Shown in pieces: positions 3,918 through 61,830 of a stretch of 64,000 nt of DNA. The notes under the pieces are model-generated. The model did not search any database and had not been told where the DNA came from. It saw nothing but the letters and a program-made list of their open reading frames with translations. The stretch is taken from the IMG/VR virus record IMGVR_UViG_3300024358_000009, positions 142,327 to 206,326 of that record. One strand, given 5' to 3'. Positions within the stretch are counted from its first letter, which is position 1; every line of letters begins with the position of its first letter. The translations under genes were made by a program, and so were the position numbers.

Positions 3918-3945
3918 TTATTCGTTATAGAAGCGGAAATATTTT
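3918..3945 (-). promoter_or_regulatory. Minus-strand copy of the phage promoter motif
   Basis: Reverse complement reads AAAA-N17-CGAATAAGTATATA. Confidence 0.65.
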
Positions 3946-4008
3946 TTTAATTTTATTTAAAATATTTTTGGTTGGTGAGCGAATAAGACTATATAAAGGA
4001 GAAAGCAA

Positions 4009-4353: not shown

Positions 4354-4637
4354 GATATAAGGGTTTAAAAAATTTTAGAATTTTTATATTATGTGCGACC
4401 CAATTATATTGGAATATGCCCATAATACCCCCTTAAACCCTAGTCCTCTCTCCTCTGTATGGTATGTACTTACATATACCTTATATATAAAGGAGTTATG
4501 TCAAATGCTTATATTAAGAGGAGTGTTAAAAAGTGGAGAAAAGTGGTGAAAAAGCCCAAAGAAAACCCCTCAAATAATACATCGAACAAAGTAAATAATT
4601 CACCCTCATAAGCGAATAAGTATATAAGGAGATAGAT

Positions 4638-9725: not shown

Positions 9726-9798
9726 GGGCGTGTAGACCAATGGCAGAGTCAAAGGACTTAAAATCCTTCAAGTATGGGTTCGACTCCCATCACGCCTA
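9726..9798 (+). tRNA. tRNA-Leu(UAA), second copy, short variable loop
   Basis: Nearly identical to 3543-3616, with a compensated acceptor stem GGGCGTG/CACGCCT. Confidence 0.92.
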
Positions 9799-42828: not shown

Positions 42829-45111
42829 ATGTCTATTACAGAGTTGCAGAAATATACAGCCATTTCTAAATATGCAAGATGGATCGAAAATGAAAAAAGA
42901 AGAGAAACTTGGGAAGAAAGCGTAGATCGTGTTAAAAACATGATGATAGAAGTATATCCAAGTCTTTCTGAAGACATTGAAAAGTATTATGGAATGATTA
43001 AAGATCAAAAAATACTTGGATCTCAAAGAGCATTACAGTTTGGTGGCAAGCCAATACTTAAACATAATGCAAGAATATACAATTGTTCAGCTAGCTATTG
43101 TGATCGACTTAGGTTTTTTCAAGAATGTTTTTATTTGCTTTTATGCGGTTCAGGAACTGGTTTTAGCGTACAAAAACACCATGTCGAACTTTTGCCCAGT
43201 TTTTCTGAAAACAGGCTTAAAAATCAAATTATAAGCCACAAAATACATGTTATAGATGACTCTATTGAAGGTTGGGCTGATGCTCTTGGAATACTGCTTT
43301 CTTCATATTTTGATAAACCGGTAAAAGAGTTTAAAGAATTTAAAGATTGTAATATTCATTTTGATTATTCTTCAATTAGAAAGAAGGGCGAACCTTTAGG
43401 TTTTGGCATTGGAACAGCCCCAGGTCATGAACCTCTTGAAAAAGCTTTAAAGAATATTAAAGCATTGCTTGATAAATGCGTTTCTGAAGGATTATCTAAA
43501 CTTCGTACTATTGATGCTTTTGATATAGTCATGCATTCTGCCGATGCCGTTATTAGTGGCGGTGTTCGTAGATCGGCTACTATAGCTTTATTCTCTGCTG
43601 ATGATGAATTAATGATTAATGCAAAAACAGGCGATTGGTATTTTACTAATCCACAAAGAGGCAGAGCTAATATATCTGCTCTTTTGCACAGAAAAGATTC
43701 TTCTAAAGAAGTATTTGAGAATTTATTTAAAGCTACTAAACAATTTGGTGAGCCAGGTTTTTTCTGGGCTGATCTTTATGATGCATTGTGCAATCCATGC
43801 TGCGAAATATCATGGGTAACAAGAGCTTATTATAAAAAAGATAGCGATGAATTAAAGCTTGCTTTGTTAAATTATGATGGTCCAATTACTACAAAGGAAA
43901 ACTGTAAAGACGATATGCCAGAAGATGAAGTTGGTCTTTCTGGTTGGGGATTTTGTAACCTTTCTACAATTAATGGAAAAACGGTCACATGCCCAGAAGA
44001 TTTTTATGAAAGGTGTGAAGCTGCTGCATTTATTGGAACGCTTCAAGCTTCATTTACTAATTTTTCTTATCTTGGAAAGATTACTGAACAGATAGTTAGA
44101 AAAGAAGCTTTGTTAGGTGTTTCGATCAATGGTATGCAGCATCATCCAGAAATACTTTTAAATCCAAAAATTCAACAGCATGGAGCTAAAATAGTAAGAC
44201 AAACAAATGAAAAATATGCAAAAGCATTGAAAATAAATCCAGCTGCCAGAACAACATGTATTAAACCAGAAGGAAATTCTGCTTGTTTATTAGGTTCAAC
44301 ATCTGGAATTCACCCAGACCATAGCCAAAAATATTTTCGTATAGTCCAAGCAAATACTAATGAAGCTCCGTATAAGTTTTTTAAATCTAAAAATCCACAA
44401 GCATGTGAAGAATCTGTTTGGTCAATAAACAAAACAGATGATTGCATTAGATTTTGTGTAGAAAGTCAAGAAGGCACAAGACTAAAAGAGTCTTTAAGCG
44501 CCACAGAACTATTAGATAATGTTGTGTCAACTTATAATAATTGGGTAATACCAGGAAAAAATGAACAATTATGTGTTTGCAAAGAAATCAATCACAATGT
44601 TTCTAATACAATACATGTGAATGAAAATGAATGGTCTATTGTGTGCGATTACATCTATAATAATAGATATTATTTGGCTGGAATATCTTTAATTGCTTCT
44701 AGTGGCGACAAAGATTATGAACAAGCACCTTTTACCGCTGTTTATACAATTGAACAGCAAGAAGAAATTTATGGAAAAGAATCTTTAGTTATAGCAAAAG
44801 AACTTTTTGATAAATATAAATCATACGAATTTAGTTCTTTGTGGAGTGCCTGTTCTTGTGCTTTAGGTTATTTTGAACCTAATAGTGATATGCAAAAAAT
44901 TTATAAAAATCATATTATTAACTTTTCCAAAATGTTTAATAATGACATTAAAAAAGCTACATATGCTTTAAAAGATATGTACAATATTGAATTATGGAAT
45001 AAGTTGAAAGAAAGTTATATTAACATAGATTATAAAGATATGATCGAAGAAAGTTCTACTATTGATGTGCAAAACGAACTGGCTTGCGCTGGAGGTTCTT
45101 GCATTATCTAG
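42829..45111 (+). CDS. nrdJ: Class II (AdoCbl-dependent) ribonucleotide reductase
   Basis: YNC, GGVRRSA, NPCCEI, CNL, TCIKPEG and C-terminal CAGGSC. No NrdB in the window. Confidence 0.9.
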   Translation: MSITELQKYTAISKYARWIENEKRRETWEESVDRVKNMMIEVYPSLSEDIEKYYGMIKDQKILGSQRALQFGGKPILKHNARIYNCSASYCDRLRFFQECFYLLLCGSGTGFSVQKHHVELLPSFSENRLKNQIISHKIHVIDDSIEGWADALGILLSSYFDKPVKEFKEFKDCNIHFDYSSIRKKGEPLGFGIGTAPGHEPLEKALKNIKALLDKCVSEGLSKLRTIDAFDIVMHSADAVISGGVRRSATIALFSADDELMINAKTGDWYFTNPQRGRANISALLHRKDSSKEVFENLFKATKQFGEPGFFWADLYDALCNPCCEISWVTRAYYKKDSDELKLALLNYDGPITTKENCKDDMPEDEVGLSGWGFCNLSTINGKTVTCPEDFYERCEAAAFIGTLQASFTNFSYLGKITEQIVRKEALLGVSINGMQHHPEILLNPKIQQHGAKIVRQTNEKYAKALKINPAARTTCIKPEGNSACLLGSTSGIHPDHSQKYFRIVQANTNEAPYKFFKSKNPQACEESVWSINKTDDCIRFCVESQEGTRLKESLSATELLDNVVSTYNNWVIPGKNEQLCVCKEINHNVSNTIHVNENEWSIVCDYIYNNRYYLAGISLIASSGDKDYEQAPFTAVYTIEQQEEIYGKESLVIAKELFDKYKSYEFSSLWSACSCALGYFEPNSDMQKIYKNHIINFSKMFNNDIKKATYALKDMYNIELWNKLKESYINIDYKDMIEESSTIDVQNELACAGGSCII

Positions 45112-45123
45112 AAAGATGTATTT

Positions 45124-46146
45124 ATGGAAATCAAAGAATTAATTAATAACAATTTAAAAAAATGGAAAATAGAACAAGCTCAAATAGATCCATTTGGTTA
45201 TTGCAACGCTAAGTGTTGGTTTTGTCCTGTTAGATATTCTCCAAATCCATCTGAAGGCAAAGTTCAGATGCCCATAGAATTATTTGAGAAGATAATAAAC
45301 AATATTTTAGAAGAAAGATCAAAAGAAGATGGCATAGTTTCAAAAAAGTTTAATGGTTTATATACAGCCCATTATAATGAAGTTTTATTGTATAAACACT
45401 TTGAGCAAATGTTGGAAATATTAAATAAAAATAACCTTTATACAATGATATTATCTAATGGAATAAATTTAACTCCAGACAAAACAGATATAATAAAAAA
45501 ACACCAAAGAATAATAAGCGGAATATGTTTAAATATACCAGCTTTTGAAGCTGAGTTATGGGAAAAAAGATCTGGAATTAAAAAAGAGAAATTTGGACAA
45601 CTTATAAGCAATATAAATTACGCAAGAATGACATTAAGAGATATGGTATCAAACAAGGCTTTTTCTATACAAATAAACGGCATAGATGAAACAAGCAAAT
45701 ATCAAAACAATGGCTGGTTAGAGCTTGGTTTTGAAGCTCCTGATTTTTCCCCAAATGAAAACGAAAGACAGCTTCAGTTAGCGAAGTCTATTTTTCCAGA
45801 AGTTAATTGTTTTAAAGTTCCACACCTTATTGATAGGGCTGGTAAATTACACGAATTAGGTATTATATCAAATAAAAAAGCAATTAATAAACATTTAAAA
45901 AAGAAAAGTGTAGTCGGTTGTTCTCATGGCAAAGAAATAGGCGGAAGACCATTTGGTTATTTGCATGTAAATGCAGCTGGCAAATTATTTTTGTGTTGTC
46001 ATGACTATGATTTTGATACAATATTTGGTGATATTAATGAATCTTCTTTGCGAGATATATGGTTTTCAGAAAACCATGTAAATGTTATAGAAAATTCATT
46101 TAATAAATTCTGTACAAATTGTGCTTCGTCAGAATGGTCGGAGTAA
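45124..46146 (+). CDS. Radical SAM protein with SPASM/twitch domain
   Basis: CNAKCWFC and C-terminal C...CC...CTNC. Confidence 0.85.
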   Translation: MEIKELINNNLKKWKIEQAQIDPFGYCNAKCWFCPVRYSPNPSEGKVQMPIELFEKIINNILEERSKEDGIVSKKFNGLYTAHYNEVLLYKHFEQMLEILNKNNLYTMILSNGINLTPDKTDIIKKHQRIISGICLNIPAFEAELWEKRSGIKKEKFGQLISNINYARMTLRDMVSNKAFSIQINGIDETSKYQNNGWLELGFEAPDFSPNENERQLQLAKSIFPEVNCFKVPHLIDRAGKLHELGIISNKKAINKHLKKKSVVGCSHGKEIGGRPFGYLHVNAAGKLFLCCHDYDFDTIFGDINESSLRDIWFSENHVNVIENSFNKFCTNCASSEWSE

Positions 46147-46148
46147 AC

Positions 46149-46385
46149 ATGGAAAAATCATTTTCTAGTGGAGACATTGTTGTTTTAAAATCTGGCGGTC
46201 TTCCAATGACGGTATTAAAAATAAATCAGAATTCAGAAGATCCAGAAGTTTTAGTAGCCTATTTTGATTTGGATGGAAATGTTATTAGGGATGGTTTTCC
46301 GCCAGAATCTTTAGAGCTTAGTGAAACTAGATGGGATATAAGTTTTTGCGTTGATATTGATGAAGATAAAAACGAATGGGAATAA
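46149..46385 (+). CDS. YodC/DUF2158 family protein
   Basis: GDIVVLKSGGLPMTV. Confidence 0.75.
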   Translation: MEKSFSSGDIVVLKSGGLPMTVLKINQNSEDPEVLVAYFDLDGNVIRDGFPPESLELSETRWDISFCVDIDEDKNEWE

Positions 46386-46386
46386 T

Positions 46387-46761
46387 ATGCCTACATTTGA
46401 ATATAAGTGTGATTCTTGTGAGTATTCTTTTGAAATAGAAAAAAGTATTCATAAAAACCACCCTAAAAAATGCCCAAAATGCAAACAAAATAAACTTTAT
46501 CAAATCTTTGGAAGTCCTTTTGTATTTTGTAATAATGTAACTACAATAGGACAATGGGCAGAAAAAAACGCAAAAACAAAAGGCAAAGGAAAAGACCAAA
46601 AATCTATGCGAGAAAAAATCGCAGACGCAGGAATTTCAAAAAAAGAAAGTAATACTCCTTGGTGGAGATCTGGCGAAGTAAAAGGTTTGCCAAAAATGGA
46701 CAAGCCTTTAAATTTAAATAAAATAAAAAATGTTAAGAAATATGTGGAGGAAGGAAAATGA
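46387..46761 (+). CDS. FmdB-family zinc-ribbon protein
   Basis: MPTFEYKCDSC...CPKC. Confidence 0.75.
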   Translation: MPTFEYKCDSCEYSFEIEKSIHKNHPKKCPKCKQNKLYQIFGSPFVFCNNVTTIGQWAEKNAKTKGKGKDQKSMREKIADAGISKKESNTPWWRSGEVKGLPKMDKPLNLNKIKNVKKYVEEGK

Positions 46762-48772
46762 ATGAAAATTTTTTTAAATCAGCAAAGCAAAACGATCCTA
46801 CAAAACCACACAAAGCTATGATTGTTGTTTACTATTCATTGCATGAAAAAGATAATCAAAATAGAGCTAATGGAAATCCGATTGAGTATGAACATAAAGA
46901 GTTTTATATTGACGGTGATGATAAATCAATATGCGAAAGAAAAGTTTTTGAACTATTAGAAATGGTAGGTAGTATATGCTCGAAAGAAAAACAGTAAATA
47001 TAAGCAAAGACCCTATTTTAACAGATAATGGTCATATATATCTTTCTTGTTCTTCTTGCAACAAAAAACTCGTTGATTTATTTATCGTAAAAAAAGATGA
47101 AAGTCTTAAATGGAAAGTGATGGCAAAATGTTGTTATTGTAACGATAAGTCTTTTATAACTGAAGTAAGCGGAATGTTTAGACCTTGTGGTATTATGAAA
47201 ATATCAGAGACAGATCCAGATGATTCTAAACTTATCACTCAGTTAGCAAATATTAAAAATGAAAATGATACAATAGTATTTTATACTAAAAAAGGAGATT
47301 GTAATGAATGATGAATACATAGATCATAAAACCACAGTAAAAGGTCTTGATTTTAATAACAAAGAAATCAGTCCACAAGATTGGTCTTGCATAGCAAAAA
47401 CATCTATTACTGAGCCAAGTAATTTACAAAGATATTTTGTTCGTGTTTGCACAGATGGTCCTGACAATGGACTTTTCTATAATCCTATGGTTCATCAACC
47501 ATCAGACCTTAAGAGATTTGATGCTTTTAAAGGAAGAAAAAGGTTTGATTTTAAGTCGGTGAATAAGGAATGCTATGATTTGTACCTTCAATTTATAGAA
47601 ACAAAAAATCCAAGTTTGTTAAAAAACGCAGAAAGGATAAGCATAAATGTCTAAGAAAAAATTGGTTTTAACAGATGAACATAAAATAATTATAGATAAA
47701 TGCTGTCAATTATTAAGCATTGATCAATTATGTAAAGCTTTAAATCTTTCAAAAGATTTGATAAATAATTATTACGAAATGGCGAATAAAAAAGCAGGAT
47801 TAAAATTTGATCAAAGACCCGGATCTGTATCTATGACACAAGCCCAGTCTATGATAGATGACACTATAAAATATGAACAAAAAAATATTTATGATTCTCC
47901 AAAATATAAAGATTGCATACATAGGACAGAATAATGATAACGCTTATAGAAGATGATTATATACAACACCAAAATGTATTTTCTGCTCAATGGATAGCAG
48001 AATTAAACGATGGAACTACTGCTTATCAAGATGATGGTCATCCAGAAAGAGATAATATCCCTTCTTGGCTTAGATTAAAGTTATATCTATTACAAAATAG
48101 ATTGAACATTGTATCATTAAAAATTAGATATAGATCTAATATTGCAGATACTTTGCCAAAAAATGCAGAGGGGTATTTTTTTTCCAATCTGGCATTTTCC
48201 ATTTTTGGTTCTCATAGCGGAAGTTGTTATGTAATAGGATATAAAGATGGAGACATAATAAAAACTGAAGAATGGCTAGTTCCAAATTTAACTCTTCTCA
48301 AGCAAGATGAAAGGCCAGTCATTATTAATGACTTTTTAATATTAAATCATGGAAGACAAATATAGCAAAAAATCTGAAACGAGAACATTTGAGTCAAGAT
48401 TTGGTGGTGGTTGGATTTCTGCTGCTCAATATTTAGCAGAAACAATGTGTGCTAGAAATGCTAAGTTTAATAAAACAGAACTTCCTCCGAAGTTTTGGAA
48501 TCACAAGCCTTGGAAAGATTATTATCTTTATCAAATAAAGCTTGCAAATAGTTTGCTTAAAAAGTATTCTCAGTCCATAATTTTTCAATCTTTGAGAACT
48601 CCAAATGGAGTTAAAGTTATTTCTTTGAAATCTCCATTTCTTCAAAAAGAAATAGCTATCATAGAAAAGAAAAGCGCTCAACAGGAAATAAAAACCACAC
48701 AAGTAGAAAACTTGGATCAAAGACCTAATTTTGTGCAGAACAAAAGTTTAAAAAGAAAGCTAGAGGAATTAG

Positions 48773-49825
48773 ATGGCCAAGAAATCTGACAAGTCAGAAT
48801 CTAAAAGTAGTGACTATTTAGAAAGAGTTATGTCTGAAGTTAATAAGCAATATGCAGAAGGAGTTGCTATTACGGCAGACAATTTATTAGATAATCCACC
48901 AGAAATTATACCTATTAGCCCTGCTTTAGATTTAGGTTTACATGGAGGGATACCAGAAGGTTCTTGGGTAACATGTAGTGGTCATCCCAAAACAGGAAAA
49001 ACATTAACATCTTTATCATTTGCTGCTGAGTGTCAAAAACAAGGCCGTCATGTTTATTACTTAAATATTGAAGGTCGTTTAAAGTCCATGAATATTCATG
49101 GTATAGAAGGTTTAGATCCTAAAAAACTAACAATTTATAGATCTGTTCCAGAAAAAATATTAACTGCTAAAGATTATTTAAATTTAGCAATGAAAGCTAT
49201 TCAGACGCATCCAAGGTCTTTAATCATTATTGATTCGGTAAGCTCTCTTTGTGATGAAAGAGAAATGGATGAAGGTATAGGTTATGAAAATCGTGGTTCT
49301 GGCAACAAGATGTTTGCTGGTTTTTGTAGGCAAGCGTCCAATCTAGTTCCCATTCAAAAAGTTATAGTTTGGTCTATTATGCACTTGGCTCAAAACCAAG
49401 GCATGTATGGTGGCTTTATTGAAAAGGGATCAAGGGCTTTACAATATCAGGCCGATGTTCAACTAAGAGTGAAATATGATAAAGCATGGACTGCTAATCA
49501 AGATGGAAAAGAAGTTCAAGTCGGTCAACAAGTTCATTGGCTTATAGAATCTTGCGCTCTTGGATCTCCAGGCATGGAAGTTGATAGTTATATTAGGTAC
49601 GGTGTCGGCATTGATAAAACATTTGAAATCATAAACCTAGGCATGGAGTTAGGTTTAATTATAAAATCTGGTGCTTGGATGAATCTTGACTATTTAAAAC
49701 GGCACATAGAAGAATCAGAAATACCAAAAGTGCAAGGTTCTGAAAAGCTTTATAAACTATTAAAAGAAAAGCCAGAATGGATAGCTCTTTTGCAAAAAGA
49801 AATAGATGATATACTAAGACCATGA
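48773..49825 (+). CDS. recA: RecA/UvsX recombinase
   Basis: LDLGLHGGIPEG, Walker A GHPKTGKT and Walker B IIIDSV. Confidence 0.9.
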   Translation: MAKKSDKSESKSSDYLERVMSEVNKQYAEGVAITADNLLDNPPEIIPISPALDLGLHGGIPEGSWVTCSGHPKTGKTLTSLSFAAECQKQGRHVYYLNIEGRLKSMNIHGIEGLDPKKLTIYRSVPEKILTAKDYLNLAMKAIQTHPRSLIIIDSVSSLCDEREMDEGIGYENRGSGNKMFAGFCRQASNLVPIQKVIVWSIMHLAQNQGMYGGFIEKGSRALQYQADVQLRVKYDKAWTANQDGKEVQVGQQVHWLIESCALGSPGMEVDSYIRYGVGIDKTFEIINLGMELGLIIKSGAWMNLDYLKRHIEESEIPKVQGSEKLYKLLKEKPEWIALLQKEIDDILRP

Positions 49826-50223
49826 AAGTAACAGGATTAGACAACAAAGAATATTCTTGGTCTATTTGGGGAAAATCCTCAGATTCGGAACAAAAATCTT
49901 CTTATCATTTAAAAGCTAGGGCATTGTTAAAAAAGTTATTTCCAATAGATAGAATTTTGGAAGAAGTTTATTTGCCGGGTTGTGATAGTTTATATGCTGA
50001 CTTTTTCTTGCCTTTGAGGAAAATAATTGTTGAGGTTCATGGAGAACAGCATTATAAATACATACCGTTTTTTCATGGCAATAAATTAAATTTTGCTAAA
50101 GCGCAAGCTAGAGATAGAAACAAAAGGCTTTTTTGTGAAAAAAATGGAATATTATATATAGATTTACCATGTAGTGAGAGTGAAGATGAGTGGAGAAACA
50201 GAATTTTGGAATGTAAATTGTAA
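49822..50223 (+). CDS. Vsr/DUF559-like endonuclease
   Basis: ADFFLP, VEVHGEQH and RD..K..FC. Confidence 0.7.
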   Translation: MKVTGLDNKEYSWSIWGKSSDSEQKSSYHLKARALLKKLFPIDRILEEVYLPGCDSLYADFFLPLRKIIVEVHGEQHYKYIPFFHGNKLNFAKAQARDRNKRLFCEKNGILYIDLPCSESEDEWRNRILECKL

Positions 50224-51073
50224 TAAAGATTTTTTTGAGTCTTTGCATAGCCCATTTGAAAATAATCTAGGCTTAACTTTTACTCCAGAAAATCCAAATG
50301 AATGTATGCGATTATTAAATTTATCGCATGATCAATTAAAAGTAATGACTTCTGACCAATGTGGCGAAGCAGCATTGTTGCTTCATAATTTTTCATTTAG
50401 ACTGACTAAAGAAATAAGTTCTAAAAAAGCATTACTTAATTATTATAGAGAATGTTTTTATAAAACTATTAGCAAATATGTATCAGACATAAAATATCTT
50501 TCGGCAGAAGAAAGAATTGCTATAGCTGCTGAACAAGATGATTATGCTAAAAAGTTAAAATTTAGCATTGTTAAACTTCAATATATTATTGATCGTGTTG
50601 AGTATTTGCCCATGAAAGTAGATAAAGTAGCAGATATGTTTAACAGTTTACAAATAGCTAGGAGAGTTAGAAATGACAATAGTAGAATTGCTTAACAAGG
50701 CTTTAGAAGAACAAAGTTTTTCTTATGTAGAAGAAGCTTTATTTAATTTAACTGGTATTAAACCAGAATCTAAAAAATCGACTAAAAAAAGAGTAAATAA
50801 AAAGAAAGAACTGGCGAATAAAACTATAGACTCTGATTTTGTAAATAATTTTGTTGATGATTTATCAATACATCCAGAGCTTGTTGAAAAAAATATAAAA
50901 AAGGTTAAAAAAAATTACAGACCAGAATATACCGAATCCTTAATTGATGTTAGTTGTTCAAAGTGCGGTTCTAAAGAAAGGGTTGAAAAAGAAGAGTTTT
51001 ATTCATTGGCTAGGTTATCAGAAGGATCTTATCTATATACTTGCCCAAAATGTATTAAAAGGAATTTATCAAG

Positions 51074-52558
51074 ATGATGCATGACCCAGCAGCTGAAAGA
51101 GCAGTTTTATCTTCTTACTTTCAACATGGTAAAGATGCATACATTGAATCTTCAGATATTTTAAATGAAGATTGTTTTTTTATAGACTCAAATAAAATAG
51201 TTTACAAATGTTTAAGACATTATTATCAAGATGAAAATGAAAAAATAGATATTCCAACATTTTTATCCATAGCAAACTCGCTTGGTTATAAAGAATTTTT
51301 TGAATCTAAAGATGAAAAAAAATATCTTAATAGCTTAACCATTCTCCCTGTTGAGTTAAAAAATACACGAAAGCTTTCTGCAAAACTTGTAAAATTAAAG
51401 ATTGCAAATTCATTAAAAAAAGAAATAGATCTAGCAAGCGGTGAATTAAACTCAGTTACTGGAGATGAAACGCTATCAAATATACTTGGGATAGCAGAAC
51501 AACGAATATTTGATTTTACACTTAATTTATCAAATAGTGAAGATTCTGCTCCAAAATTCATTGGCGATGGCATAGATGAATATATACAACACTTGGAAAA
51601 TAATCCTATTACTCAGATAGGTATTCCGAGTGGTTTTCCTATTTATGATCAATGTATTGGCGGTGGTTTTAGACCTGGCACAGTAAACATCATTGGCGCA
51701 AGAATGAAAACCGGAAAGTCATTCTTTGGAGATGCCGTAGCACTAAACATTTCTGAAAAACTAAACATACCAGTTTTAGTATTAGATACTGAAATGTCTA
51801 ACAAAGATCATTGGCATAGAATGTTAGCGTCAATATCTGGAGTTAAAATTAACGACATAGAAACTGGTAAATATATATCATTGCCAGATGGTAAAAATAA
51901 AATAAACAACGCTAAAGAAAAGCTTAAATCAATACCTTATTATTATAAATCAATAGCCGGACAACCTTTTGAAGAAACATCAGGCATTATGCGAAGATGG
52001 ATAATGCAAAAAGTAGGTCTTAATGAAAGCGGTCAAGCCAATCCATGTTTAATAGTATTTGATTACATTAAGCTAATGAGTGATGATTCTATAAGTAAAA
52101 ACATGGCTGAATATCAAGCATTAGGCTTTCTGATGACTTCTTTGCATAATTTTTGTGTAAAATACGGAGTGCCATGTCTTGCATTCACTCAATTAAATCG
52201 TGATGGTATAAATCGTGAAGATACAGATGTAGCGTCTGGTTCTGATAGAATTCTTTGGTTATGCAGTAATTTTTCTATATATAAAAGAAAATCAGAGGAG
52301 GAATTAGCAGAAGAAGTTCCAGCAGCTAATGGCAAAAGATATAATTTAAAGTTAATACCAATTATTAGTAGGCATGGAAATGGCTTATCACAAGGTGATT
52401 ATATCAACATTTGTGGCGAATATGAGATAGGTAGGATTTCTGAAGGGCCTACAAGAAATAATTTTCACTCACTAAGAAATACTAATAGCGGTTTTACTAT
52501 TTCAGAAGAGGTGTCAAGAAATGAGCCAATTGACTTCTTTGGATCAGACGAAGATTAG
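51074..52558 (+). CDS. dnaB: Replicative helicase
   Basis: AERAVL, GARMKTGKS, DTEM, FDYIKL and QLNR. Confidence 0.92.
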   Translation: MMHDPAAERAVLSSYFQHGKDAYIESSDILNEDCFFIDSNKIVYKCLRHYYQDENEKIDIPTFLSIANSLGYKEFFESKDEKKYLNSLTILPVELKNTRKLSAKLVKLKIANSLKKEIDLASGELNSVTGDETLSNILGIAEQRIFDFTLNLSNSEDSAPKFIGDGIDEYIQHLENNPITQIGIPSGFPIYDQCIGGGFRPGTVNIIGARMKTGKSFFGDAVALNISEKLNIPVLVLDTEMSNKDHWHRMLASISGVKINDIETGKYISLPDGKNKINNAKEKLKSIPYYYKSIAGQPFEETSGIMRRWIMQKVGLNESGQANPCLIVFDYIKLMSDDSISKNMAEYQALGFLMTSLHNFCVKYGVPCLAFTQLNRDGINREDTDVASGSDRILWLCSNFSIYKRKSEEELAEEVPAANGKRYNLKLIPIISRHGNGLSQGDYINICGEYEIGRISEGPTRNNFHSLRNTNSGFTISEEVSRNEPIDFFGSDED

Positions 52559-53633
52559 TTTTATGTCTGAAAAAATATTTGAGAATATTCAAATATTCTT
52601 AGATATGTTTGACATTAAATATAAAAATGTACAGAATTATATTTCTGCTCCATGTCCAATACATGGTGGAGATAATCCTACTGCTTTTTGTATGTATCTA
52701 GATGGGAATACTTTAAAAGGTAACTGGTGTTGTTATACACATCATTGTGAAGAAATATTTAGGCCAACACCATTTGGTTTTATTAGAGGTGTTCTTTCTA
52801 ACAAATACAATAATTGGACAGGGCAACTTAAAGATATAAAATACGGTTTTTTAAAAACATATGACTTTTGTCAATCAATACTGAAAATTGATGAATCTAA
52901 TATTCCAGAGTTAAATAATATAGAAAAAAGAAAGTTTTGTAATGATATTAAAATATTTACAAAAACTAAAAAATTCTTTAAAGGTTGGAATTTACATAAT
53001 GTTATTTCAAGTATGGATATACCATCACAATATTTTTTAAATAGAGGTTATAAAAGAGAAACCTTGGAACATTTTTGTGTTGGCACTTCAAAGAAAAATG
53101 ACGGCATTTTTAGAGATAGGTCTATAGTTCCAGTCATAGCACAAGACGGAATTCATGTTGTCGGTTTTACTGGAAGATCAAATTATGAAAAATGTTTAAA
53201 GTGCAATCAATATCACGAAGGATCATGTGAATCTAAAAACAAAAATTATATATATTCAAAATGGGTAAATAACAAAGGTTTTGCAAAAGAAAGATACTTA
53301 TATAACTTACACAATGCTATAGAAGCTGCTAAATACAGTAAAAAAATAATTTTATGTGAAGGTCCAGCTGATGTTTGGTCTTTATATGAAAAAGGTATTG
53401 AAAATGCCGTTGCTATATTTGGAACATCTTTAACTGATTCTCAACAAATTATATTAGAGACTTGCGATATACATAAGATAATCTTATTATTAGACAATGA
53501 TGAAGCTGGCATTGAAGCAAGAGAAAAAATCAAGTCATCTTTATGTAGGTTTTTTAACATAGCAGTACCAAAATATGAAGGTAAAGATCCTGGATCATCC
53601 AATTCAAATTTGAAGGACATATGCAATGTGTAA
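52521..53633 (+). CDS. dnaG: DNA primase
   Basis: CPIHGGDN zinc finger, GFTGR and TOPRIM CEGPADV...LDNDEAG. Confidence 0.9.
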   Translation: MSQLTSLDQTKISFMSEKIFENIQIFLDMFDIKYKNVQNYISAPCPIHGGDNPTAFCMYLDGNTLKGNWCCYTHHCEEIFRPTPFGFIRGVLSNKYNNWTGQLKDIKYGFLKTYDFCQSILKIDESNIPELNNIEKRKFCNDIKIFTKTKKFFKGWNLHNVISSMDIPSQYFLNRGYKRETLEHFCVGTSKKNDGIFRDRSIVPVIAQDGIHVVGFTGRSNYEKCLKCNQYHEGSCESKNKNYIYSKWVNNKGFAKERYLYNLHNAIEAAKYSKKIILCEGPADVWSLYEKGIENAVAIFGTSLTDSQQIILETCDIHKIILLLDNDEAGIEAREKIKSSLCRFFNIAVPKYEGKDPGSSNSNLKDICNV

Positions 53634-54288
53634 AATATTAGGAATAAGTGGTAAAAAAAGTGCTGGAAAAGACACGCTAGCTAATGCATTTTTTAATCAT
53701 TGTAGATTTTTTTTAAATAAAAAAGTAGAAATTATACCTTTTGCACTAGCTTTAAAAGATACATGTCAAAATTTATTCAGTATAAAAAAGAAATCTATTT
53801 ATGGAACCGAAGAACAAAAAAATGAATTAACTTATTATAAATGGTCTGATATGCCTAATTTTGTATCTGAAAGTATTTATGAAAAAATAAAATCTTCTGG
53901 CATTGATCCAAAAGATATAGGTTTGTTTACAAAAAATGATTCATATATGACTGGTAGAGAATTTTTACAATTTTTTGGAACTGAAATTTGTAGAAAAATA
54001 AGCGATAACATACATATACAAGCAACATTTACAAAAATTAATTCTTTAAAAAGAGATTTTTTTATTATTCCAGATGTAAGATTTGTAAACGAAGTTAAAT
54101 CAATTCAAGAAAACGGTGGATATGTAGTAAGATTAAACAGGGGTATTTCAAGTGATACACACTCTTCAGAAAAAGAATTGGACGATTTTAAAAACTTTGA
54201 TTTAATAATAGACAATTCAAAATTATCTGTAGATAAAGAATTATCTTTGTTAAATAAATTTTTAACCAAAAAAGGTTGGTTTAAATGA
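53626..54288 (+). CDS. Deoxynucleoside monophosphate kinase
   Basis: GKKSAGKDT, FA..LK, REFLQFFGTE, DVRFVNE and HSSE. Confidence 0.85.
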   Translation: MCKILGISGKKSAGKDTLANAFFNHCRFFLNKKVEIIPFALALKDTCQNLFSIKKKSIYGTEEQKNELTYYKWSDMPNFVSESIYEKIKSSGIDPKDIGLFTKNDSYMTGREFLQFFGTEICRKISDNIHIQATFTKINSLKRDFFIIPDVRFVNEVKSIQENGGYVVRLNRGISSDTHSSEKELDDFKNFDLIIDNSKLSVDKELSLLNKFLTKKGWFK

Positions 54289-55304
54289 TAATAACCTATT
54301 TAAGGTCTTCTTCAGCTGGCTCGTTTGAATGGTGTCAGCATAAATATTTTTTAACATATTGTTTAGGTTTTAAAGATGATTCTAATAAAAAAGCTGTAAA
54401 AGGAAATATAGTTCATAAAGCACTAGAGTTACTAGCTAATAAACAGCTTTGTTTGCAAACAAAGACCAAAAATTTTCGTGATGATGAATTAGATAAAGAG
54501 TTTGATACCTTGCTTATTTGTCCAGAGCAAGCTATTAAGTCAGCTTTTGAATTTTATAGCAAAAAAGAAAATGCTTTTGAGTGGACAGATAAAGATTTTG
54601 AGGAATGCGACAAATGGTTATGGGATACTTTATTATTTAAAGACGGAATGTTTTCCCCATTGAATAGAGTAATAGTTGAGCCAGAAAAATATTTTGATAT
54701 AGAGCTAGATAAACCTTGGGCTAAATACGATTTTAGACTTATGAACGGAGAAACCGTTTCTGGTAATTTAAGATTAAAAGGAACTATGGATCTTATAACC
54801 AGAATAGATTCAAAAACAATTGAATACATAGATTGGAAAACAGGAGAAAGAAAAAATTGGTCTACTGGAAAAGAAAAGGGTTATGACGATCTATTTGATG
54901 ATTTTCAACTTAGACTTTATCATTATGCTTTAAGCAAAGTCTATCCAAATGAAGAAAATATAATAGTTACAATATTTTTTGTTAAAGCTGGCGGACCATT
55001 TTCTATATGTTTTCACAAGGAAGATCTTATAGAAACAGAAGAAATGATAAGAAAGAAGTTTGAATCAATAAAAAAATGCAAAACTCCAATGAGAATTATG
55101 GATTTGGGTAGAGATAAATGGAAATGCAGTAAATTATGCAAGTTTTATAAAGACGATTTTCAAGATGGAGTATCAACTTGTAGAAAAATTCATGAGGAAA
55201 TAGTTGAGTTGGGATTAGAAAAAGTTTATACTAAATATGCTGACTTCACAGCGGTTAAACAGTATGGTAGTGGTGGCGGTAAAACTAACAGGGAATCAAC
55301 ATGA
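54285..55304 (+). CDS. PD-(D/E)XK exonuclease (RecB/Cas4-like)
   Basis: GNIVHKALE, GTMD, IDWKTG, QLRLY and a Cys cluster. Confidence 0.8.
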   Translation: MIITYLRSSSAGSFEWCQHKYFLTYCLGFKDDSNKKAVKGNIVHKALELLANKQLCLQTKTKNFRDDELDKEFDTLLICPEQAIKSAFEFYSKKENAFEWTDKDFEECDKWLWDTLLFKDGMFSPLNRVIVEPEKYFDIELDKPWAKYDFRLMNGETVSGNLRLKGTMDLITRIDSKTIEYIDWKTGERKNWSTGKEKGYDDLFDDFQLRLYHYALSKVYPNEENIIVTIFFVKAGGPFSICFHKEDLIETEEMIRKKFESIKKCKTPMRIMDLGRDKWKCSKLCKFYKDDFQDGVSTCRKIHEEIVELGLEKVYTKYADFTAVKQYGSGGGKTNREST

Positions 55305-56043: not shown

Positions 56044-57957
56044 ATGTCAAATTGGATTCCGTTGCATGTTCACTCGCAATATTCATTGCTTGATGGACTT
56101 CCTTCTGCTGAAAGAATAGCAGATAGGATATCAGAACTTGGATTAAAAGGTTGTGCATTAACAGATCATGGATCTTTATCTGGTTCTATTTCATTTTATA
56201 AAAAGTTAAAATCCAAATCTATTGATCCAATACTTGGTTGTGAATTTTATATATGTGAAAATGAACCTACAATAAAGAATGAAGATAATAAAAAACTAAG
56301 TCATTTATGTGTTCTTGCAAAACAAGATATTGGATGGAAGAACTTAGTAAAAGCTAGTTCTATTTCTAGTTCTCCAGAAAACTTTTATAGAAAACCAAGA
56401 CTTGACCTTAAAACTCTTGCGTCTATTTCAAATGGTTCCTTTATTGTTTTTTCTGGTCACCCAGGTTCTGACTTGGGAAATTGTTTATTTACAAACTTAA
56501 CAGAAGCATATAGAGCAGAAACATTTGAACACGCCAAGTCATTAATTGATCCTAATTGGGAAAAGAAAGCTACTGATCTAGCATATAAATACGCAGACTT
56601 ATTTGGAAAAGAAAACTTTTACTTAGAAATACAGTTAATAGATTCTGAAAACATACCAGCGACTAAAATAATAGCTAAAGCTTTAAGACATATAGCAAAA
56701 AAGCACGGTTTCAAAACCGTTGCTACACCAGATGCTCATTATGCAAGAAAAGAAGATGCTGTTGACCAAAGAGTTTTGTTAGCTTGTTCGATGAAAAAGA
56801 CATTAAATGATATTAGAAATCATATTCAAAACGATGAAGACTTTGGTTTTTCTGGTTTTTTTAAATCAAATAATTATCATATACCGTCTTTTGAAGAAAT
56901 TTCTAAATTAAACTCTAATGAAGAGATAGAAAATACATTTGAAATATTTAACAGGTGCAAAGATTATAGTATTTTGAAATCTCCTATGTTGCCAAAAATA
57001 ACTGGAGATAGTTCATCGTCATCAGAAATAAAAAGACTCTGTAGAGAAGGTTGGAAAAAAAGATTTTCTTTTAAAAAAGAAGACCCAAAATTTAATCAAT
57101 ATGGAGATAGAGTCACTAAAGAATTAGAAGTTATAACTTCTGCTGGCTTAGAAGACTATTTCCTAATTGTTTATGATTATTGCAATTGGGCGAGAGAACA
57201 GGGGTGGCTTATTGGCAAAGGTCGTGGATCTGGCGCTGGATGTATGGTTAGTTATTTATTGGGAATTACTGAAATAAATCCAATTGAAAACGGATTATTG
57301 TTTGAAAGATTTTATAATTCTGGTCGTAATGCTCCAGGAAGAATTAGTTTGCCAGATATTGATTGTGATTTCCCAATATCAAAAAGAGAAGAGATTATTA
57401 ACTATATTAAAAACAAATATGGTAATGATAAAGTTTCTCAAATATCTGTTTTTACAAGAATGCAAGGCCGAGGTGCTTTAAAAGATGTTTTGCGTATTCA
57501 CGCTGCTTGTAGCTTTGAAGAAAGCAATCTAATAACAAAACATATTCCAGATGAAGCTGAAATAACCGAAGAATTACAAGAAATGAGAGATGAAGGACAA
57601 GAACCTTCTATAATTAGATGGGCCTTAGAAAATTGCCAAAAAGATTTAGATCCATATTGTAAACTAAAAGATGACGGAACATTAGAAGGTCAATATGCAA
57701 AATACTTTGCCCAAGCAATAAGGATGGAAGGAACTAAAAGATCACAAAGCAAACATGCTGCTGGAATAGTAATTGCCTCTGAGAATTTACAAAATATATG
57801 CCCTATGATTTATGATAAAACATCTCATGAAAATATAGCTGGATTAGAAATGTCTGATCTTGAATCTATTGGGCTTGTTAAATTTGATATTCTTGGGGTT
57901 GCAGTTTTGGATAAAATGATGGGCGTTCAAAAACTTCTTGCTGGAGAAAGTTTATGA
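56044..57957 (+). CDS. dnaE: DNA polymerase III alpha, part 1 (PHP and catalytic palm/thumb)
   Basis: HVHSQYSLLDG, TDHG, GRGSGAG, PDIDCDF, HAAG, ending after KFDILG. No intein. Confidence 0.93.
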   Translation: MSNWIPLHVHSQYSLLDGLPSAERIADRISELGLKGCALTDHGSLSGSISFYKKLKSKSIDPILGCEFYICENEPTIKNEDNKKLSHLCVLAKQDIGWKNLVKASSISSSPENFYRKPRLDLKTLASISNGSFIVFSGHPGSDLGNCLFTNLTEAYRAETFEHAKSLIDPNWEKKATDLAYKYADLFGKENFYLEIQLIDSENIPATKIIAKALRHIAKKHGFKTVATPDAHYARKEDAVDQRVLLACSMKKTLNDIRNHIQNDEDFGFSGFFKSNNYHIPSFEEISKLNSNEEIENTFEIFNRCKDYSILKSPMLPKITGDSSSSSEIKRLCREGWKKRFSFKKEDPKFNQYGDRVTKELEVITSAGLEDYFLIVYDYCNWAREQGWLIGKGRGSGAGCMVSYLLGITEINPIENGLLFERFYNSGRNAPGRISLPDIDCDFPISKREEIINYIKNKYGNDKVSQISVFTRMQGRGALKDVLRIHAACSFEESNLITKHIPDEAEITEELQEMRDEGQEPSIIRWALENCQKDLDPYCKLKDDGTLEGQYAKYFAQAIRMEGTKRSQSKHAAGIVIASENLQNICPMIYDKTSHENIAGLEMSDLESIGLVKFDILGVAVLDKMMGVQKLLAGESL

Positions 57958-58206
57958 AACGAAAAGGCGATCTACAAGATGAACTTGTTTCTTTGCATGA
58001 AAAAATTAAAACAAAAGATGTTGTTATAAAAGAAACATTGATGTTAATGAAAGCTTTGGTTTTTAAATTAGGACGAAAAGTTAATCTTAAATCTGAATTT
58101 TTAGAAGCTGCAAAAAGCAATGAGTTTTATGTAGATTTAAAATATGATGAAGAAGGCACATTGAAACTTGAAATTAAAAAAACCTTAGATCTAGAATAGG
58201 AAGAAA

Positions 58207-58872
58207 ATGAATAATTCAACTATAGTTGTTTTTGATTTTGAAACTGGTAGTGTAAACCCAGAAACTTGTGAAGTTATACAAGTTGCAGCGATGGCTTTGC
58301 ATCCAAGAAGTTTAACTGAGCTTGGTCAATATAGCAGCTTGATTAAACCAAGGGATTTTTCAAAATTGGAAAAAGAAGCTCTTGAAATAAACAAGAAAAG
58401 CATTGAAGAATTAGAAAAGGCTCCAGATCTTTCTATTGTTTGGAAATCTTTTACATCGTTTATTAAAAAATATAATCCAAAACCAGGAAACACTTTCTTT
58501 GCTCCAATAGCAGCTGGAAAAAACATTAGGCATTTTGACTTAATTATTATTAATCGTTTAGCAAAAGAATTTGGCGATTGTGATAAAAACGGAAAACAAA
58601 ACTTATTTAATAAAAGAAGCGTTTTTGATTTAGATGATTTTATTTTTCAATGGTTTGATAATTCTAATGAACTCCGTGATCATAAAATGGATACTTTAAG
58701 AGAATTTTTCGGTCTTTCTACAGCAAATGCTCACGATGCATTAGTAGATGTTAAACAAACAGCTTTACTATTGAAAAGTTTTATTCAACTACATAGAAAA
58801 GTAGCTACGAGAGTTAACTTTAAAAACTCTTTAAATGAAAACTCTGGTACTGCAAAGGGCTTTATATCTTGA
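58207..58872 (+). CDS. DEDDh 3'-5' exonuclease (DnaQ-like)
   Basis: DFETG, N..FD and HDALVD. Confidence 0.85.
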   Translation: MNNSTIVVFDFETGSVNPETCEVIQVAAMALHPRSLTELGQYSSLIKPRDFSKLEKEALEINKKSIEELEKAPDLSIVWKSFTSFIKKYNPKPGNTFFAPIAAGKNIRHFDLIIINRLAKEFGDCDKNGKQNLFNKRSVFDLDDFIFQWFDNSNELRDHKMDTLREFFGLSTANAHDALVDVKQTALLLKSFIQLHRKVATRVNFKNSLNENSGTAKGFIS

Positions 58873-58879
58873 GGTAATA

Positions 58880-59782
58880 ATGGAAGATTTTTATAAATTT
58901 GATTGTGGTTGTAAGTGGCCAATTTTAGAACCATCTAAAAATGGAAAAATACCAAAGCTTAAAATAAATTTACACAACTTACCATATTGTGATTTAGCTT
59001 GGAAAATTTTTTCAAATGGTGATACCAAGGGCATTTTTCAATTGGAATCTCATCTTGGTAAACAATGGTCAAAGAAATTAAAACCCAAAAATATGGAGCA
59101 TTTATCTGCTCTTGGCGCACTTTTAAGGCCGGGTTGTCTTCGTGCATTAGACGAAGATGGAATTTCTATGACAGAACATTATTGCAAAAGAGTTAATGGC
59201 TTAGAAAAAGTTCCTAGTTATCATGAATCCGTTGATGAAATATTAAAACCAACTTATGGCGCTTTAGTTTTTCAAGAACAAGCTATGCAAATAGCACAAG
59301 CTGTTGCTGGATTTAACTTGCAAGAAGCTGATGTTTTGAGAAAAGCTATTGGTAAAAAAAATACCCAAGAAATGGCTAACTGCAAAAAGATGTTTATTGA
59401 CGGTGCTAAAAAAGCAAAGATTATTTCTGACGAACAAGCAGAAGAGTTATTTGGTTGGATACAAGCAAGTCAAAGATATTCATTTAATAAATGTTTGTCT
59501 CCAGATTCTGTAGTAGAAACAAAAGAAGGCTTTAAAACACTTAAAGAATTAAATATTAATGATTATGTTTTAGCTCCATCTATCAAATATAAAAAAAATA
59601 TTTTTATTAAAGTAAAAGATAAAATAAATAATGGAAAACAAGAAGTTTATGAAATAACAACATCAAGTGGCAAAAAGTTAAAATGCACATTAAATCACAA
59701 AATATTATGTTCTGATGGTAAAAAAAGAACGCTTTATGATATTTTAGAAAAAAACTATAGTATTATGTGTGACCTAGAATAA
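58880..59782 (+). CDS. dnaE: DnaE part 2 (fingers) fused to the N-half of a split intein (59492-59779)
   Basis: GIFQLES, LRPG, FQEQ, LRKAIGKK, YSFNK|CLSPDS...CTLNHK. Confidence 0.92.
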   Translation: MEDFYKFDCGCKWPILEPSKNGKIPKLKINLHNLPYCDLAWKIFSNGDTKGIFQLESHLGKQWSKKLKPKNMEHLSALGALLRPGCLRALDEDGISMTEHYCKRVNGLEKVPSYHESVDEILKPTYGALVFQEQAMQIAQAVAGFNLQEADVLRKAIGKKNTQEMANCKKMFIDGAKKAKIISDEQAEELFGWIQASQRYSFNKCLSPDSVVETKEGFKTLKELNINDYVLAPSIKYKKNIFIKVKDKINNGKQEVYEITTSSGKKLKCTLNHKILCSDGKKRTLYDILEKNYSIMCDLE

Positions 59783-59809
59783 TCGGTGTAATAAGTCATA
59801 GGTGATACT

Positions 59810-60739
59810 ATGAAAATAGAAAAGAATTTTTGGAATAAATGTTTTCTATGTAATAAAAACTTACATGAAATTAAAAAATTTTATGGAGGCTCTAATGTTT
59901 ATTTTTCTAAAGCCATGGCTCAACATATAGTTTCTCATAAAATCTCTTTAGAAGACTATTTTGAAAAAATAGTTAAAATAATAAGACCTATTTGTAAATG
60001 CGGAGAATGCAATAAAAAAACAAAAATAATTTTAAGAAATAAAAATAAAAACGGTTTTTTCTGGAAAGAATATGCATGTGGTAGATACGAAGGATCAAAA
60101 AAATGGTCTAAAGATGCAAAAATTTCTAGAATTGGTAAAAACAATCCAATGTTTGGCAAAAAACCTTGGAACTTAGGGATGAATAAGAAAAATTCAGAAT
60201 ATGGTAAAAAGATGTCTTTGTATAGGATTGGTAAAAAAACATCAAAAGAATCTAAAAACAAACAATCAATATCTGCTAAAAAAAGATTGATTCATGGTCA
60301 TACAGGAATTAAACATTCAGAGTTTTCAAAAAAATTAATGTCTATAGCTACTTTAAACAGAATTAAAAAAGGAGCTTTTAAACATACAAAAACCAAGCCT
60401 CATTTATTAATGAAAAGTATTTTACAAAAATTAAAATTAAATTTTGAAGAAGAAAAGATTATAGAATGTTGGATTTTTGATTTTTGGTTAAAAGATTATA
60501 ATTTATTTATTGAAGTAGACGGAGATTATTTTCATGTTAATCCAAAGATTTATCCAAATGGGCCAAAAACGAATACTCAAAAGATTAATTTTTATAGAGA
60601 CAAAGTAAAAAATAAGTTTTGTCTTGATAATAAACTAAAACTTATTAGATTTTGGGAAAGCGATATTTTAAATAACGAAGGCATTATAATAAAGGAAATA
60701 CAATGCAGCCTGAATCAATCGTGTCAATTAAAAAAATAG
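59810..60739 (+). mobile_element. Free-standing homing endonuclease (NUMOD3 repeats plus Vsr-like/EDxHD domain) between the intein halves
   Basis: NPMFGKKP and HSEFSKKLMS, then DF...IEVDGDYFH...RD...IRFWE. Confidence 0.85.
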
Positions 60740-61830
60740 GAATTATTGAAACATTAGATATTGAAGTTGATAATGAAGAACATATCTTTTATGCGAATGG
60801 AATTGCGGTATCAAACAGTCACAGTTCCGCCTATGGCTTTACTGGATATGATACAGCTTATTTAAAAAGTCATTTCCCAGTACAATTTTTTACGAGTTGG
60901 CTTTTTTACGCAAAAGATAAAGCTGATAGCTCTCAAGAAGTTGCCGATCTAATAGACAATGCAAAGCTTTATAATATAAATGTATATCCTCCAGATATCA
61001 GAATGTTAAAGTCAAACTTTTATACTGATGGGGAATCTATTTGGTTTGGCTTGTCCGATATAAAAGGAATAGGTACTTCACAAATAAGTAAACTTATTTC
61101 TTGCTTCAATTCTCAATCTGAAAAAATAGATAGTTGGATTAAATTTTTAATTTATTGTTCAGACTCTATTTCTTCTACATCAGTAGCAAAAGTTATTGCT
61201 GTCGGCGGTTTTGATTGGTGTGGCGAGTATAGACAAAAACTTATATCTGAATTAGAAACTTGGAATCAATTAACAGAAAAAGAAAAAGAATGGATTAAAG
61301 AAAATTGCAAAGAAACAAAAAATCTTAAAGAATGCATTTTAGCTTTATCAAAACCTAAAAAAGAAGGTGGTGGATGCAGTAATAAAAATCGTATTTCATT
61401 AACATCTGATTTATATAATATGTTAGAAAATCCTCCAACTGAATATAATGATCCAATATCTTGGAAAGTTTGGTCAGAAAGAGAAAATCTTGGCATAGCA
61501 CTATCATGTTCATTAACGGATGGAATAGAAAATCAATCTGCTAATACAACATGCAAAGAATTTTATTTTGGTAAAACTGGATTTATGGTATTGTCAGTTG
61601 AAATATTAGATGTTAAAGAAATAGTTACAAAAAATGGAAAAGATCCTGGTAGAAGAATGGCTAGATTAACTGTATCCGATTCTTCTTGTAAAATAGACAA
61701 TGCTATAATATTTCCAGATGCTTACGAAATGCATCTAGATAAAGTATTTGTAGGAAATACTGTTTTGATTCGTGTTGATCGTGATCGCAAAACAGATGCT
61801 ATGGTTTTAAAGGACATTAACCAACTTTAA
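60703..61830 (+). CDS. dnaE: Split-intein C-half (60703-60816) fused to DnaE part 3 (HhH and OB fold)
   Basis: IVSIKKIG...DIEV...HIFYANGIAVSN|SHSSAYG...YLKSHFP and GLSDIKGIG. Confidence 0.92.
   Translation: MQPESIVSIKKIGIIETLDIEVDNEEHIFYANGIAVSNSHSSAYGFTGYDTAYLKSHFPVQFFTSWLFYAKDKADSSQEVADLIDNAKLYNINVYPPDIRMLKSNFYTDGESIWFGLSDIKGIGTSQISKLISCFNSQSEKIDSWIKFLIYCSDSISSTSVAKVIAVGGFDWCGEYRQKLISELETWNQLTEKEKEWIKENCKETKNLKECILALSKPKKEGGGCSNKNRISLTSDLYNMLENPPTEYNDPISWKVWSERENLGIALSCSLTDGIENQSANTTCKEFYFGKTGFMVLSVEILDVKEIVTKNGKDPGRRMARLTVSDSSCKIDNAIIFPDAYEMHLDKVFVGNTVLIRVDRDRKTDAMVLKDINQL

Follow-up and report, generated by a model that had tools for sequence, protein, structure and literature searches.

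A predicted naturally split intein with an endonuclease gene between its halves in the dnaE gene of a phage

Dassa et al. described the "fractured gene" layout in 2009, already with three DnaE loci in which a split intein is accompanied by a free-standing endonuclease, a Vsr-like one in DnaE-2 (PMC2677866). The hallmarks are a 3' overlap of 6-69 bp between the endonuclease gene and the downstream open reading frame (ORF) and a 5' hairpin; the DnaE loci, from marine and Lake Gatun Global Ocean Sampling (GOS) reads, were never biochemically characterised (PMC2677866). The definition of the EDxHD or Vsr-like homing endonuclease family goes back to Dassa et al. in 2009 (PMC2677866) and to Taylor et al. 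in 2011 (PMC3239194). Novikova et al. call the finger domain of PolIII alpha a hot spot for inteins, whose sites a-d and g all fall in a span of 75 residues. Here we describe a dnaE locus of this kind on a 64,000-nucleotide (nt) stretch of DNA (hereafter the window, in whose positions coordinates are given) from the IMG/VR virus record IMGVR_UViG_3300024358_000009 (G000, the whole record of 206,326 nt). Very probably, a 1325-nt mobile element lies in frame at the DnaE site FNK|SHS (the bar marks the insertion point) and is made up of a class-1 mini-intein that a free-standing EDxHD gene interrupts at the usual point of endonuclease insertion (Table 1). Since an endonuclease gene lies between the intein halves, the locus has the already described fractured-gene arrangement. 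The reading draws on the anatomy of the locus, homology, an exact insertion, empty and contiguous alleles, and a conserved hairpin and overlap.

The N-terminal intein half (IntN) begins with the codon of Cys1 (59492-59494), directly after ...YSFNK, and its stop codon is at 59780-59782. Block B reads C-T-L-N-H, with the TxxH aligned to that of the DnaB and Npu DnaE inteins, and the Hint profile gives IntN 31.9 bits, over the Pfam cut-off of 29.7. The C-terminal half (IntC) is encoded by a separate ORF (60703-61830) with its own start and its own AAGGA (60692-60696) six bases 5' of the ATG. Block F of IntC lies in ...LDIEVDNEEH..., and the half ends in ...AVSN, followed by SHSSAYGF with Ser at +1; it aligns weakly with the C-terminal blocks of the DnaX, PolB16 and gp41-1 inteins. 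All residues of the class-1 pathway are kept, namely Cys1, T66/H69, D19/H27, Asn38 and Ser+1. IntN contains 17 K and 1 R versus 6 D and 7 E (net +5, isoelectric point 9.0), and IntC contains 2 K versus 2 D and 5 E (net -5, isoelectric point 4.25). An earlier note on this DNA had placed a naturally split intein pair at 59492-60816, with Cys1, TLNH, a Ser-Asn end and Ser at +1, and our coordinates and residues agree with it to the base. Its charge counts (18 K/R against 13 D/E in IntN; 2 K against 7 D/E in an IntC of 38 residues) are likewise correct. The note also put FNK|SH four residues downstream of the cyanobacterial split DnaE site, which holds because the C-extein of Ssp DnaE starts with CFNK (PMC3154154). 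With the Pfam Hint match, the separate ORFs, the exact insertion and the catalytic residues taken together, the pair seems to be a genuine, intact-looking, naturally split class-1 intein in a fractured phage dnaE, and we infer that it splices.

The association of the two halves was modelled with IntN plus 5 extein residues and IntC plus 5 extein residues. The complex scored an ipSAE of 0.71, versus 0.03 for the best control; three runs shared at least 96% of the contacts, and the partner pLDDT was 76. The mark used for the complex model was met by 51 of 78 solved complexes and by 2 of 108 mismatched pairs. Structures of intein complexes were already available, and part of this score may stem from memorised solved inteins or from likeness to them; the model supports association of IntN with IntC, short of proof. 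The surest modelled contacts connect IntN 51-57 (EVYEITT) with IntC 6-14 (IVSIKKIGI), and IntN 41-43 (within IFIKVKDKI) with IntC 21-22 (within DIEVDNEE). In the model, each of the two strand pairs is charge-complementary locally, with opposite signs, and the polarity of the whole fragments (IntN basic, IntC acidic) would derive from the pair formed by IntN 41-43 and IntC 21-22.

The 1325-nt block is an exact in-frame insertion relative to five intein-less alleles, which are the first dnaE copy of G000 and those of loci L004-L007. All five encode a contiguous 541-residue protein reading ...SQRYSFNKSHSSAYG..., and the empty site of the G000 copy is ...TTCAACAAA|AGTCACAGT.... The N-extein of 204 residues and the C-extein of 337 residues add up to the same 541 residues and align without gaps to the intein-less homologue at 90.4% identity. 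The intein-less dnaE of G000 is located ~146 kb from the dnaE of the window, and the self-comparison of G000 shows a lone gap of 1320 nt, which coincides with window positions 59494-60814. The element has a GC content of 24.5%, versus 30.5-32.5% in the exteins, and the low value is consistent with foreign or mobile DNA. An assembly artefact, in which reads from two related phages of a mixed sample were joined into a chimera, could be suspected from the 206-kb record, in which 57 kb of a second, related phage seem to be added to a single genome. The occupied allele, however, recurs with 100% identity on another three IMG/VR contigs, and a total of 32 contigs from several samples carry it; the element is therefore not an assembly accident. 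The same architecture also occurs in unrelated samples at 40-53% identity, and the edges of the element fall exactly on codon boundaries, so that we assign the artefact a next to negligible probability.

The structure of the record itself deserves a comment. Positions 1-58,947 of G000 are collinear with 149,318-206,319 at ~70-83% nucleotide identity, the first 140 nt being 97% identical, and an apparent assembly junction lies at window ~6992 (G000 149318). The record, labelled "complete", looks like a ~149-kb genome followed by the 57 kb of the second phage, that is, a chimeric or wrap-round assembly, with the intein-less dnaE in the first part of G000 and the intein-bearing dnaE in the second. 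The IMG/VR contig 3300024509_000007 (221 kb) contains the same pair of intein-bearing and intein-less dnaE genes ~146 kb apart, which suggests that it is built like G000. Two tRNA-Leu(TAA) genes (window 3543-3616 and 9726-9798), 6 kb apart and on opposite sides of the apparent junction, may be the two phages' copies of one gene.

The ORF between the intein halves encodes a 309-residue protein with an N-terminal Cys/His cluster, possible NUMOD3-like motifs and a C-terminal Vsr-like EDxHD nuclease. Its DUF559 match is over the cut-off, and it also matches PHROG families annotated "homing endonuclease", PHROG 9084 among them. When the protein is aligned with four positional homologues from other loci, E235, D237, H242 and D264 are invariant. 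A profile of these five sequences matches I-Bth0305I (3r3p, E=3.4e-4) and the DUF559 endonuclease-like protein 3hrl (E=2.5e-4), with a marginal match to Vsr (E=0.36); a PDB search with the single 309-residue sequence gave a spurious ribosomal match only, and the five-sequence profile was needed. NUMOD3 was found in all five homologues (best E=6.7e-6), the window's own copy being weak (E=0.076). From these similarities, the 309-residue protein is predicted to be a Vsr-like/EDxHD homing endonuclease. The 3' end of its ORF shares 37 nt with the IntC ORF. Its 5' end is covered by an RNA hairpin (-19.7 kcal/mol, z=-5.2, with 0 of 200 shuffles as good) that includes the stop codon of IntN as well as the Shine-Dalgarno sequence (AGGTGA, 59800-59805) and the ATG (59810-59812) of the endonuclease gene, the latter two being base-paired with the last part of the IntN coding sequence. 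Four other loci, although divergent in sequence, also have a hairpin in which the start codon is paired, which makes five of five loci in all.

We infer splicing, endonuclease activity and homing from this arrangement as follows. The upstream ORF would produce the N-extein joined to IntN, with the stop codon provided by the endonuclease cassette, and the downstream ORF would produce IntC joined to the C-extein, from a start codon that lies within the last part of the endonuclease gene and is served by a separate Shine-Dalgarno sequence. The halves would associate by complementary charged strands, K-rich IntN 37-45 pairing with D/E-rich IntC 19-26, and a second pairing would connect IntN E51/E54 with IntC K10/K11. 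They would then fold into a HINT domain and trans-splice through a Cys1 thioester, Ser+1 transesterification and Asn38 cyclisation, and the spliced product would be a DnaE polypeptide of 541 residues with fingers, HhH and OB parts. The hairpin over the ribosome-binding site and the ATG would hold down translation of the endonuclease. The endonuclease, in turn, would cut intein-less dnaE alleles of co-infecting relatives, and the element would be copied into them.

A few observations weigh against this reading. The Pfam Intein_splicing profile reaches 27.7 bits, under its cut-off of 35.8, and the penultimate residue of IntC is Ser, not the commoner His, although Ser is common to most members of the family. 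Npu DnaE likewise has a penultimate Ser. The DnaE-1 to DnaE-3 loci of Dassa et al. were compared by description, and the FNK|SHS site or the sequence of the pair may equal one of them. The intein halves could also be a splicing-dead relic, in which case the DnaE fragments would be joined non-covalently, via the intein halves or the exteins, without a peptide bond. The phage Aeh1 offers a precedent, in that its endonuclease-fragmented NrdA is reportedly assembled without splicing (PMC3045599). In addition, the palm and the fingers of this DnaE are already separate polypeptides with no intein involved, and the enzyme thus tolerates non-covalent assembly. Against a relic, Cys1, T66/H69, D19/H27 of block F, Asn38 and Ser+1 are all present, and the same residues are kept in the 83 split cluster representatives described below at 40-54% identity, which points to selection on catalysis. 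We therefore regard the relic as very unlikely and retain the interpretation of a splicing-competent element.

The relatives of the element were collected by a HMMER search with IntN, which retrieved 712 proteins at E<=1e-3. Family counts are from the best 150 matches, which are 50%-identity cluster representatives. At least 83 of these 150 are split, with the intein at DnaE ...FN(K)|C and a protein end no more than a few residues away from that of IntN, and 34 carry an intein at the same DnaE site inside a longer protein. In 33 of the 34, it is a contiguous mini-intein of 125-150 residues; the 34th is without a findable intein end. The nearest inteins are 46-54% identical over IntN (P0001, 46%; P0152, 53%; P0039, 54% over 90 alignment columns), and the sources of the ten clusters that were looked up are metagenomes only, with no GOS or NCBI names. 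An IntN tree of 117 sequences has good support for 4 of its 113 inner branches, the careful search being unfinished, and this is too little resolution for tracing changes of charge type.

The layout of IntN, endonuclease and IntC recurs in L015, L017, L019 and L023, where the endonucleases are EDxHD homologues and the overlaps measure 1-43 nt. The break in L033 holds a LAGLIDADG ORF (3863-4768; faint Pfam matches only), that in L024 holds a GIY-YIG ORF on the opposite strand (4263-5024, -), and the same intein break is hence occupied by three endonuclease families, EDxHD, LAGLIDADG and GIY-YIG. The break at the P0122 locus is without an endonuclease. The dnaE of one contig (from the set of P0122 and P0020 loci) is fractured by two tandem split inteins, the second without an endonuclease. 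Contiguous inteins occupy FNK|SHS in a syntenic phage (L021) and, as a mini-intein of 153 residues, in the cultured Rhodococcus phage Weasels2 (NC_041887 gp102; L027:1580-4423). The gp102 protein is annotated "DNA polymerase", and the record leaves its intein unannotated. The phages with empty, contiguous and split states of the site have in common a syntenic dnaE module of split dnaE, DnaQ-like exonuclease, single-stranded DNA-binding protein (SSB) and glycosyltransferase. A degenerate DNA pattern for FNK-CLSP found only the window's phage and two contigs with contiguous inteins. A word search with IntC (region 1-45) returned no candidate and is uninformative either way, and the extein strings searched for are absent from PMC3585056 and PMC11168065. 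The site is empty in close relatives and holds a contiguous mini-intein in more distant ones. Empty, contiguous and split-plus-endonuclease states thus exist at one site, and they are the stages that Dassa et al. set out in their gene-breaking model.

The more distant relative L015 also has a second, contiguous intein of the same sequence family (L015:4001-5185), inserted at ...EADELR|C...TSN|SAIGKK, ~150 residues of the mature extein upstream of the split one. The DnaE-1 locus of Dassa et al. reportedly also held part of an additional intein (PMC2677866).

The earlier note had called the pair new, independent and probably orthogonal. A split-intein type that evolved independently and had not been seen before, with orthogonality given by its reversed charge, would agree with the insertion site and the +1 residue, which are unlike those of cyanobacterial DnaE, and with the net charges of +5 and -5. 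It would also agree with the search among the solved inteins of the PDB, in which IntN and IntC have no close relative (all E>=1e-3). On the other hand, split and contiguous inteins at the very same DnaE site form a large family, of which the pair is a member, and it is therefore not an isolated invention. The layout and the DnaE hosts were published in 2009 (PMC2677866), gp41-1 and gp41-8 already show the reversed polarity, and a charge swap alone left the cross-reactivity of Npu DnaE in place. We consider such a new type exceedingly unlikely. "Independent" thus stands insofar as the pair is distinct from the cyanobacterial DnaE intein (site, Ser+1, E~1e-3) and falls insofar as it is one of many at this site; "new" applies to the sequence and not to the kind, known since 2009 (PMC2677866), the 309-residue endonuclease gene having been overlooked. 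The polarity opposite to Npu and Ssp DnaE is real here, but was already familiar from gp41-1 and gp41-8. Near identity to a solved or characterised intein was not found among those compared, gp41-1 matching at E=0.06 and the nearest metagenomic relatives at 46-54% identity. Judged by sequence comparison, the pair appears to be a new, uncharacterised sequence of the kind described in 2009, with a polarity that is not unprecedented, and seems to stand out within its family solely by its reversed charge pattern.

Taken singly, the net charges of IntN and IntC are unremarkable for this Lys-rich proteome, in which 17% of 96-residue segments have a net charge of +5 or more and 6.7% of 38-residue segments have -5 or less. 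The two values gain their meaning when set against the rest of the family. Across the 82 further split IntN at this site, the net charge averages -7.1 and is positive in only 5, and the N-parts of the contiguous members are nearer neutral than the split ones (mean -2.4). Both halves were readable in nine loci. In all four pairs with a basic IntN (+4 to +6), the IntC is acidic (-3 to -11), and in all five pairs with the commoner, strongly acidic IntN (-7 to -12), the IntC is close to neutral (-1 to +1). L023 and L035 have pairs of the basic-IntN type, and L017 and L019 have pairs of the acidic-IntN type. The charges of IntN and IntC are negatively correlated over these nine loci (Spearman rho -0.70, p=0.036, with relatedness ignored). 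AT-richness was considered as the cause of a basic IntN and rejected, for GC content fails to separate the charge types. The combination of positive IntN and negative IntC has been documented for gp41-1 and gp41-8 (PMC2677866), structurally for gp41-1 (bioRxiv 546465), and swapped strand charges in Npu DnaE left cross-reactivity in place (bioRxiv 546465). Polarity alone is therefore no predictor of orthogonality, which for the pair of the window is a hypothesis. That two co-adapted charge types coexist in one split-intein family at DnaE FNK|SHS, with the window in the rare basic-IntN type, is a tentative proposal that we hold to be rather unlikely.

This division of one family into two charge types alone goes beyond published knowledge. 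If the switch arose repeatedly and blocks cross-association, nature would have produced orthogonal pairs inside a single allele family; if true, they could prevent mis-pairing of polymerase halves between co-infecting phages and would serve as a natural experiment on how charge steers the halves of split inteins. The locus is a clean natural illustration of the Dassa model and leaves the understanding of inteins unchanged, and its value is one candidate reagent plus a data set on the co-evolution of halves. Naturally split inteins are few among the characterised tools. To our knowledge, the fast Ser+1 split inteins gp41-1, NrdJ-1 and IMPDH-1 are all of fractured-gene origin, and the pair of the window is therefore a reasonable toolbox candidate.

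Table 1 Features of the fractured dnaE locus, in window positions (aa, amino acids).
Feature	Coordinates	Strand	Evidence and remarks
dnaE piece 1, 637 aa	56044..57957	+	Pfam PHP E=4e-35, DNA_pol3_alpha E=3e-73
ORF of 81 aa, function not assigned	57954-58199	+	between dnaE pieces 1 and 2
DnaQ-like 3'-5' exonuclease	58207-58872	+	Pfam RNase_T E=1.4e-15; PHROG 192 E=1.5e-24
N-extein, 204 aa, first part of DnaE finger domain	58880..59491	+	Pfam DNA_pol3_finger E=1e-42
IntN, 96 aa	59492..59779	+	Cys1, block B T66-L-N-H69; Pfam Hint E=1.3e-7
RNA hairpin	59756..59812	+	-19.7 kcal/mol, z=-5.2, 0/200 shuffles as good
Predicted free-standing homing endonuclease gene, 309 aa	59810..60739	+	Pfam DUF559 E=8e-5; PHROG 9084
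IntC, 38 aa	60703..60816	+	block F D19/H27, terminal S37-N38, net -5
C-extein, 337 aa, SHSSAYGF...	60817..61830	+	Pfam HHH_6 E=2.8e-7

The remaining parts of the polymerase are arranged around the element. The first dnaE piece comprises the PHP domain and the Pol III alpha palm/NTPase. The ORF 58835-59782 holds the N-extein, which ends in ...SQRYSFNK, together with IntN; the frame is open back to 58835, and the called product of 300 residues begins with MEDFYKFD, the called start probably being 58880. The C-extein contains the remaining fingers, followed by the HhH and the OB-like C-terminus of DnaE. The break between palm and fingers, within the stretch 56044-58880, is without any intein and is filled by the 81-residue ORF and the exonuclease gene, PHROG 192 being annotated "DNA polymerase exonuclease subunit". 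This break is also present in L005, L007, L015, L017 and L021, and its conservation in relatives indicates that the phage group builds Pol III alpha from separate polypeptides. A replication and nucleotide module lies upstream of dnaE (42829-55304) and encodes RecA, DnaB helicase, DnaG-type primase, a PD-(D/E)XK exonuclease, a class II ribonucleotide reductase-like protein (760 residues, weak matches) and a radical-SAM/SPASM protein. No inteins were found in the genes of this module in the window; the L017 homologue of the PD-(D/E)XK gene, 661 residues long with a weak LAGLIDADG match, may hold one.

Among the known systems, the cyanobacterial split DnaE inteins (Ssp and Npu, PolIII alpha site a) share with the window the host protein, the finger-domain hot spot, the class-1 split type and an IntC of ~36-38 residues. 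They differ in the site, which is four residues further upstream (…|CFNK), in the +1 residue, which is Cys, and in their halves, which are encoded at unlinked loci without an endonuclease and have an acidic IntN and a basic IntC. The IntN of the window matches that of Npu DnaE with E=1.3e-3 and that of Ssp DnaE with E>1. The gp41-1 and gp41-8 inteins (GOS; crystal structure 6QAZ) resemble the pair in their fractured-gene origin, Cys1 and Ser+1, an IntC of ~37-38 residues, and a positive IntN with a negative IntC. Unlike the pair, they reside in a helicase gene, and the similarity to gp41-1 (6qaz) is marginal (E=0.059 for IntN, E=0.069 for IntC). The gp41 endonuclease is reportedly of the GIY-YIG type in a figure of Dassa et al., and that of the window is of the predicted EDxHD type.

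The endonuclease of the window corresponds to I-Bth0305I, the prototype of the EDxHD homing endonucleases (PMC3239194; 3R3P), in a C-terminal Vsr-fold nuclease with E/D/H/D and possibly in an N-terminal NUMOD-type DNA-binding region. However, I-Bth0305I lies in a group I intron of recA, whereas the gene of the window is free-standing inside a split intein and its product has an extra N-terminal Cys/His cluster. The contiguous mini-inteins at FNK|SHS (Weasels2 gp102, P0006/L021) have the same insertion point and belong to the same intein family, and differ in being single polypeptides of 125-153 residues without an endonuclease. The fractured genes of Dassa et al. are alike in that a split intein, broken at the endonuclease-insertion point, interrupts a phage DNA-metabolism gene, and a free-standing GIY-YIG or Vsr-like endonuclease lies between the halves. 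A hairpin over the 5' end of the endonuclease gene is common to both, as is the overlap of this gene with the downstream ORF, 6-69 bp there and 37 nt here.

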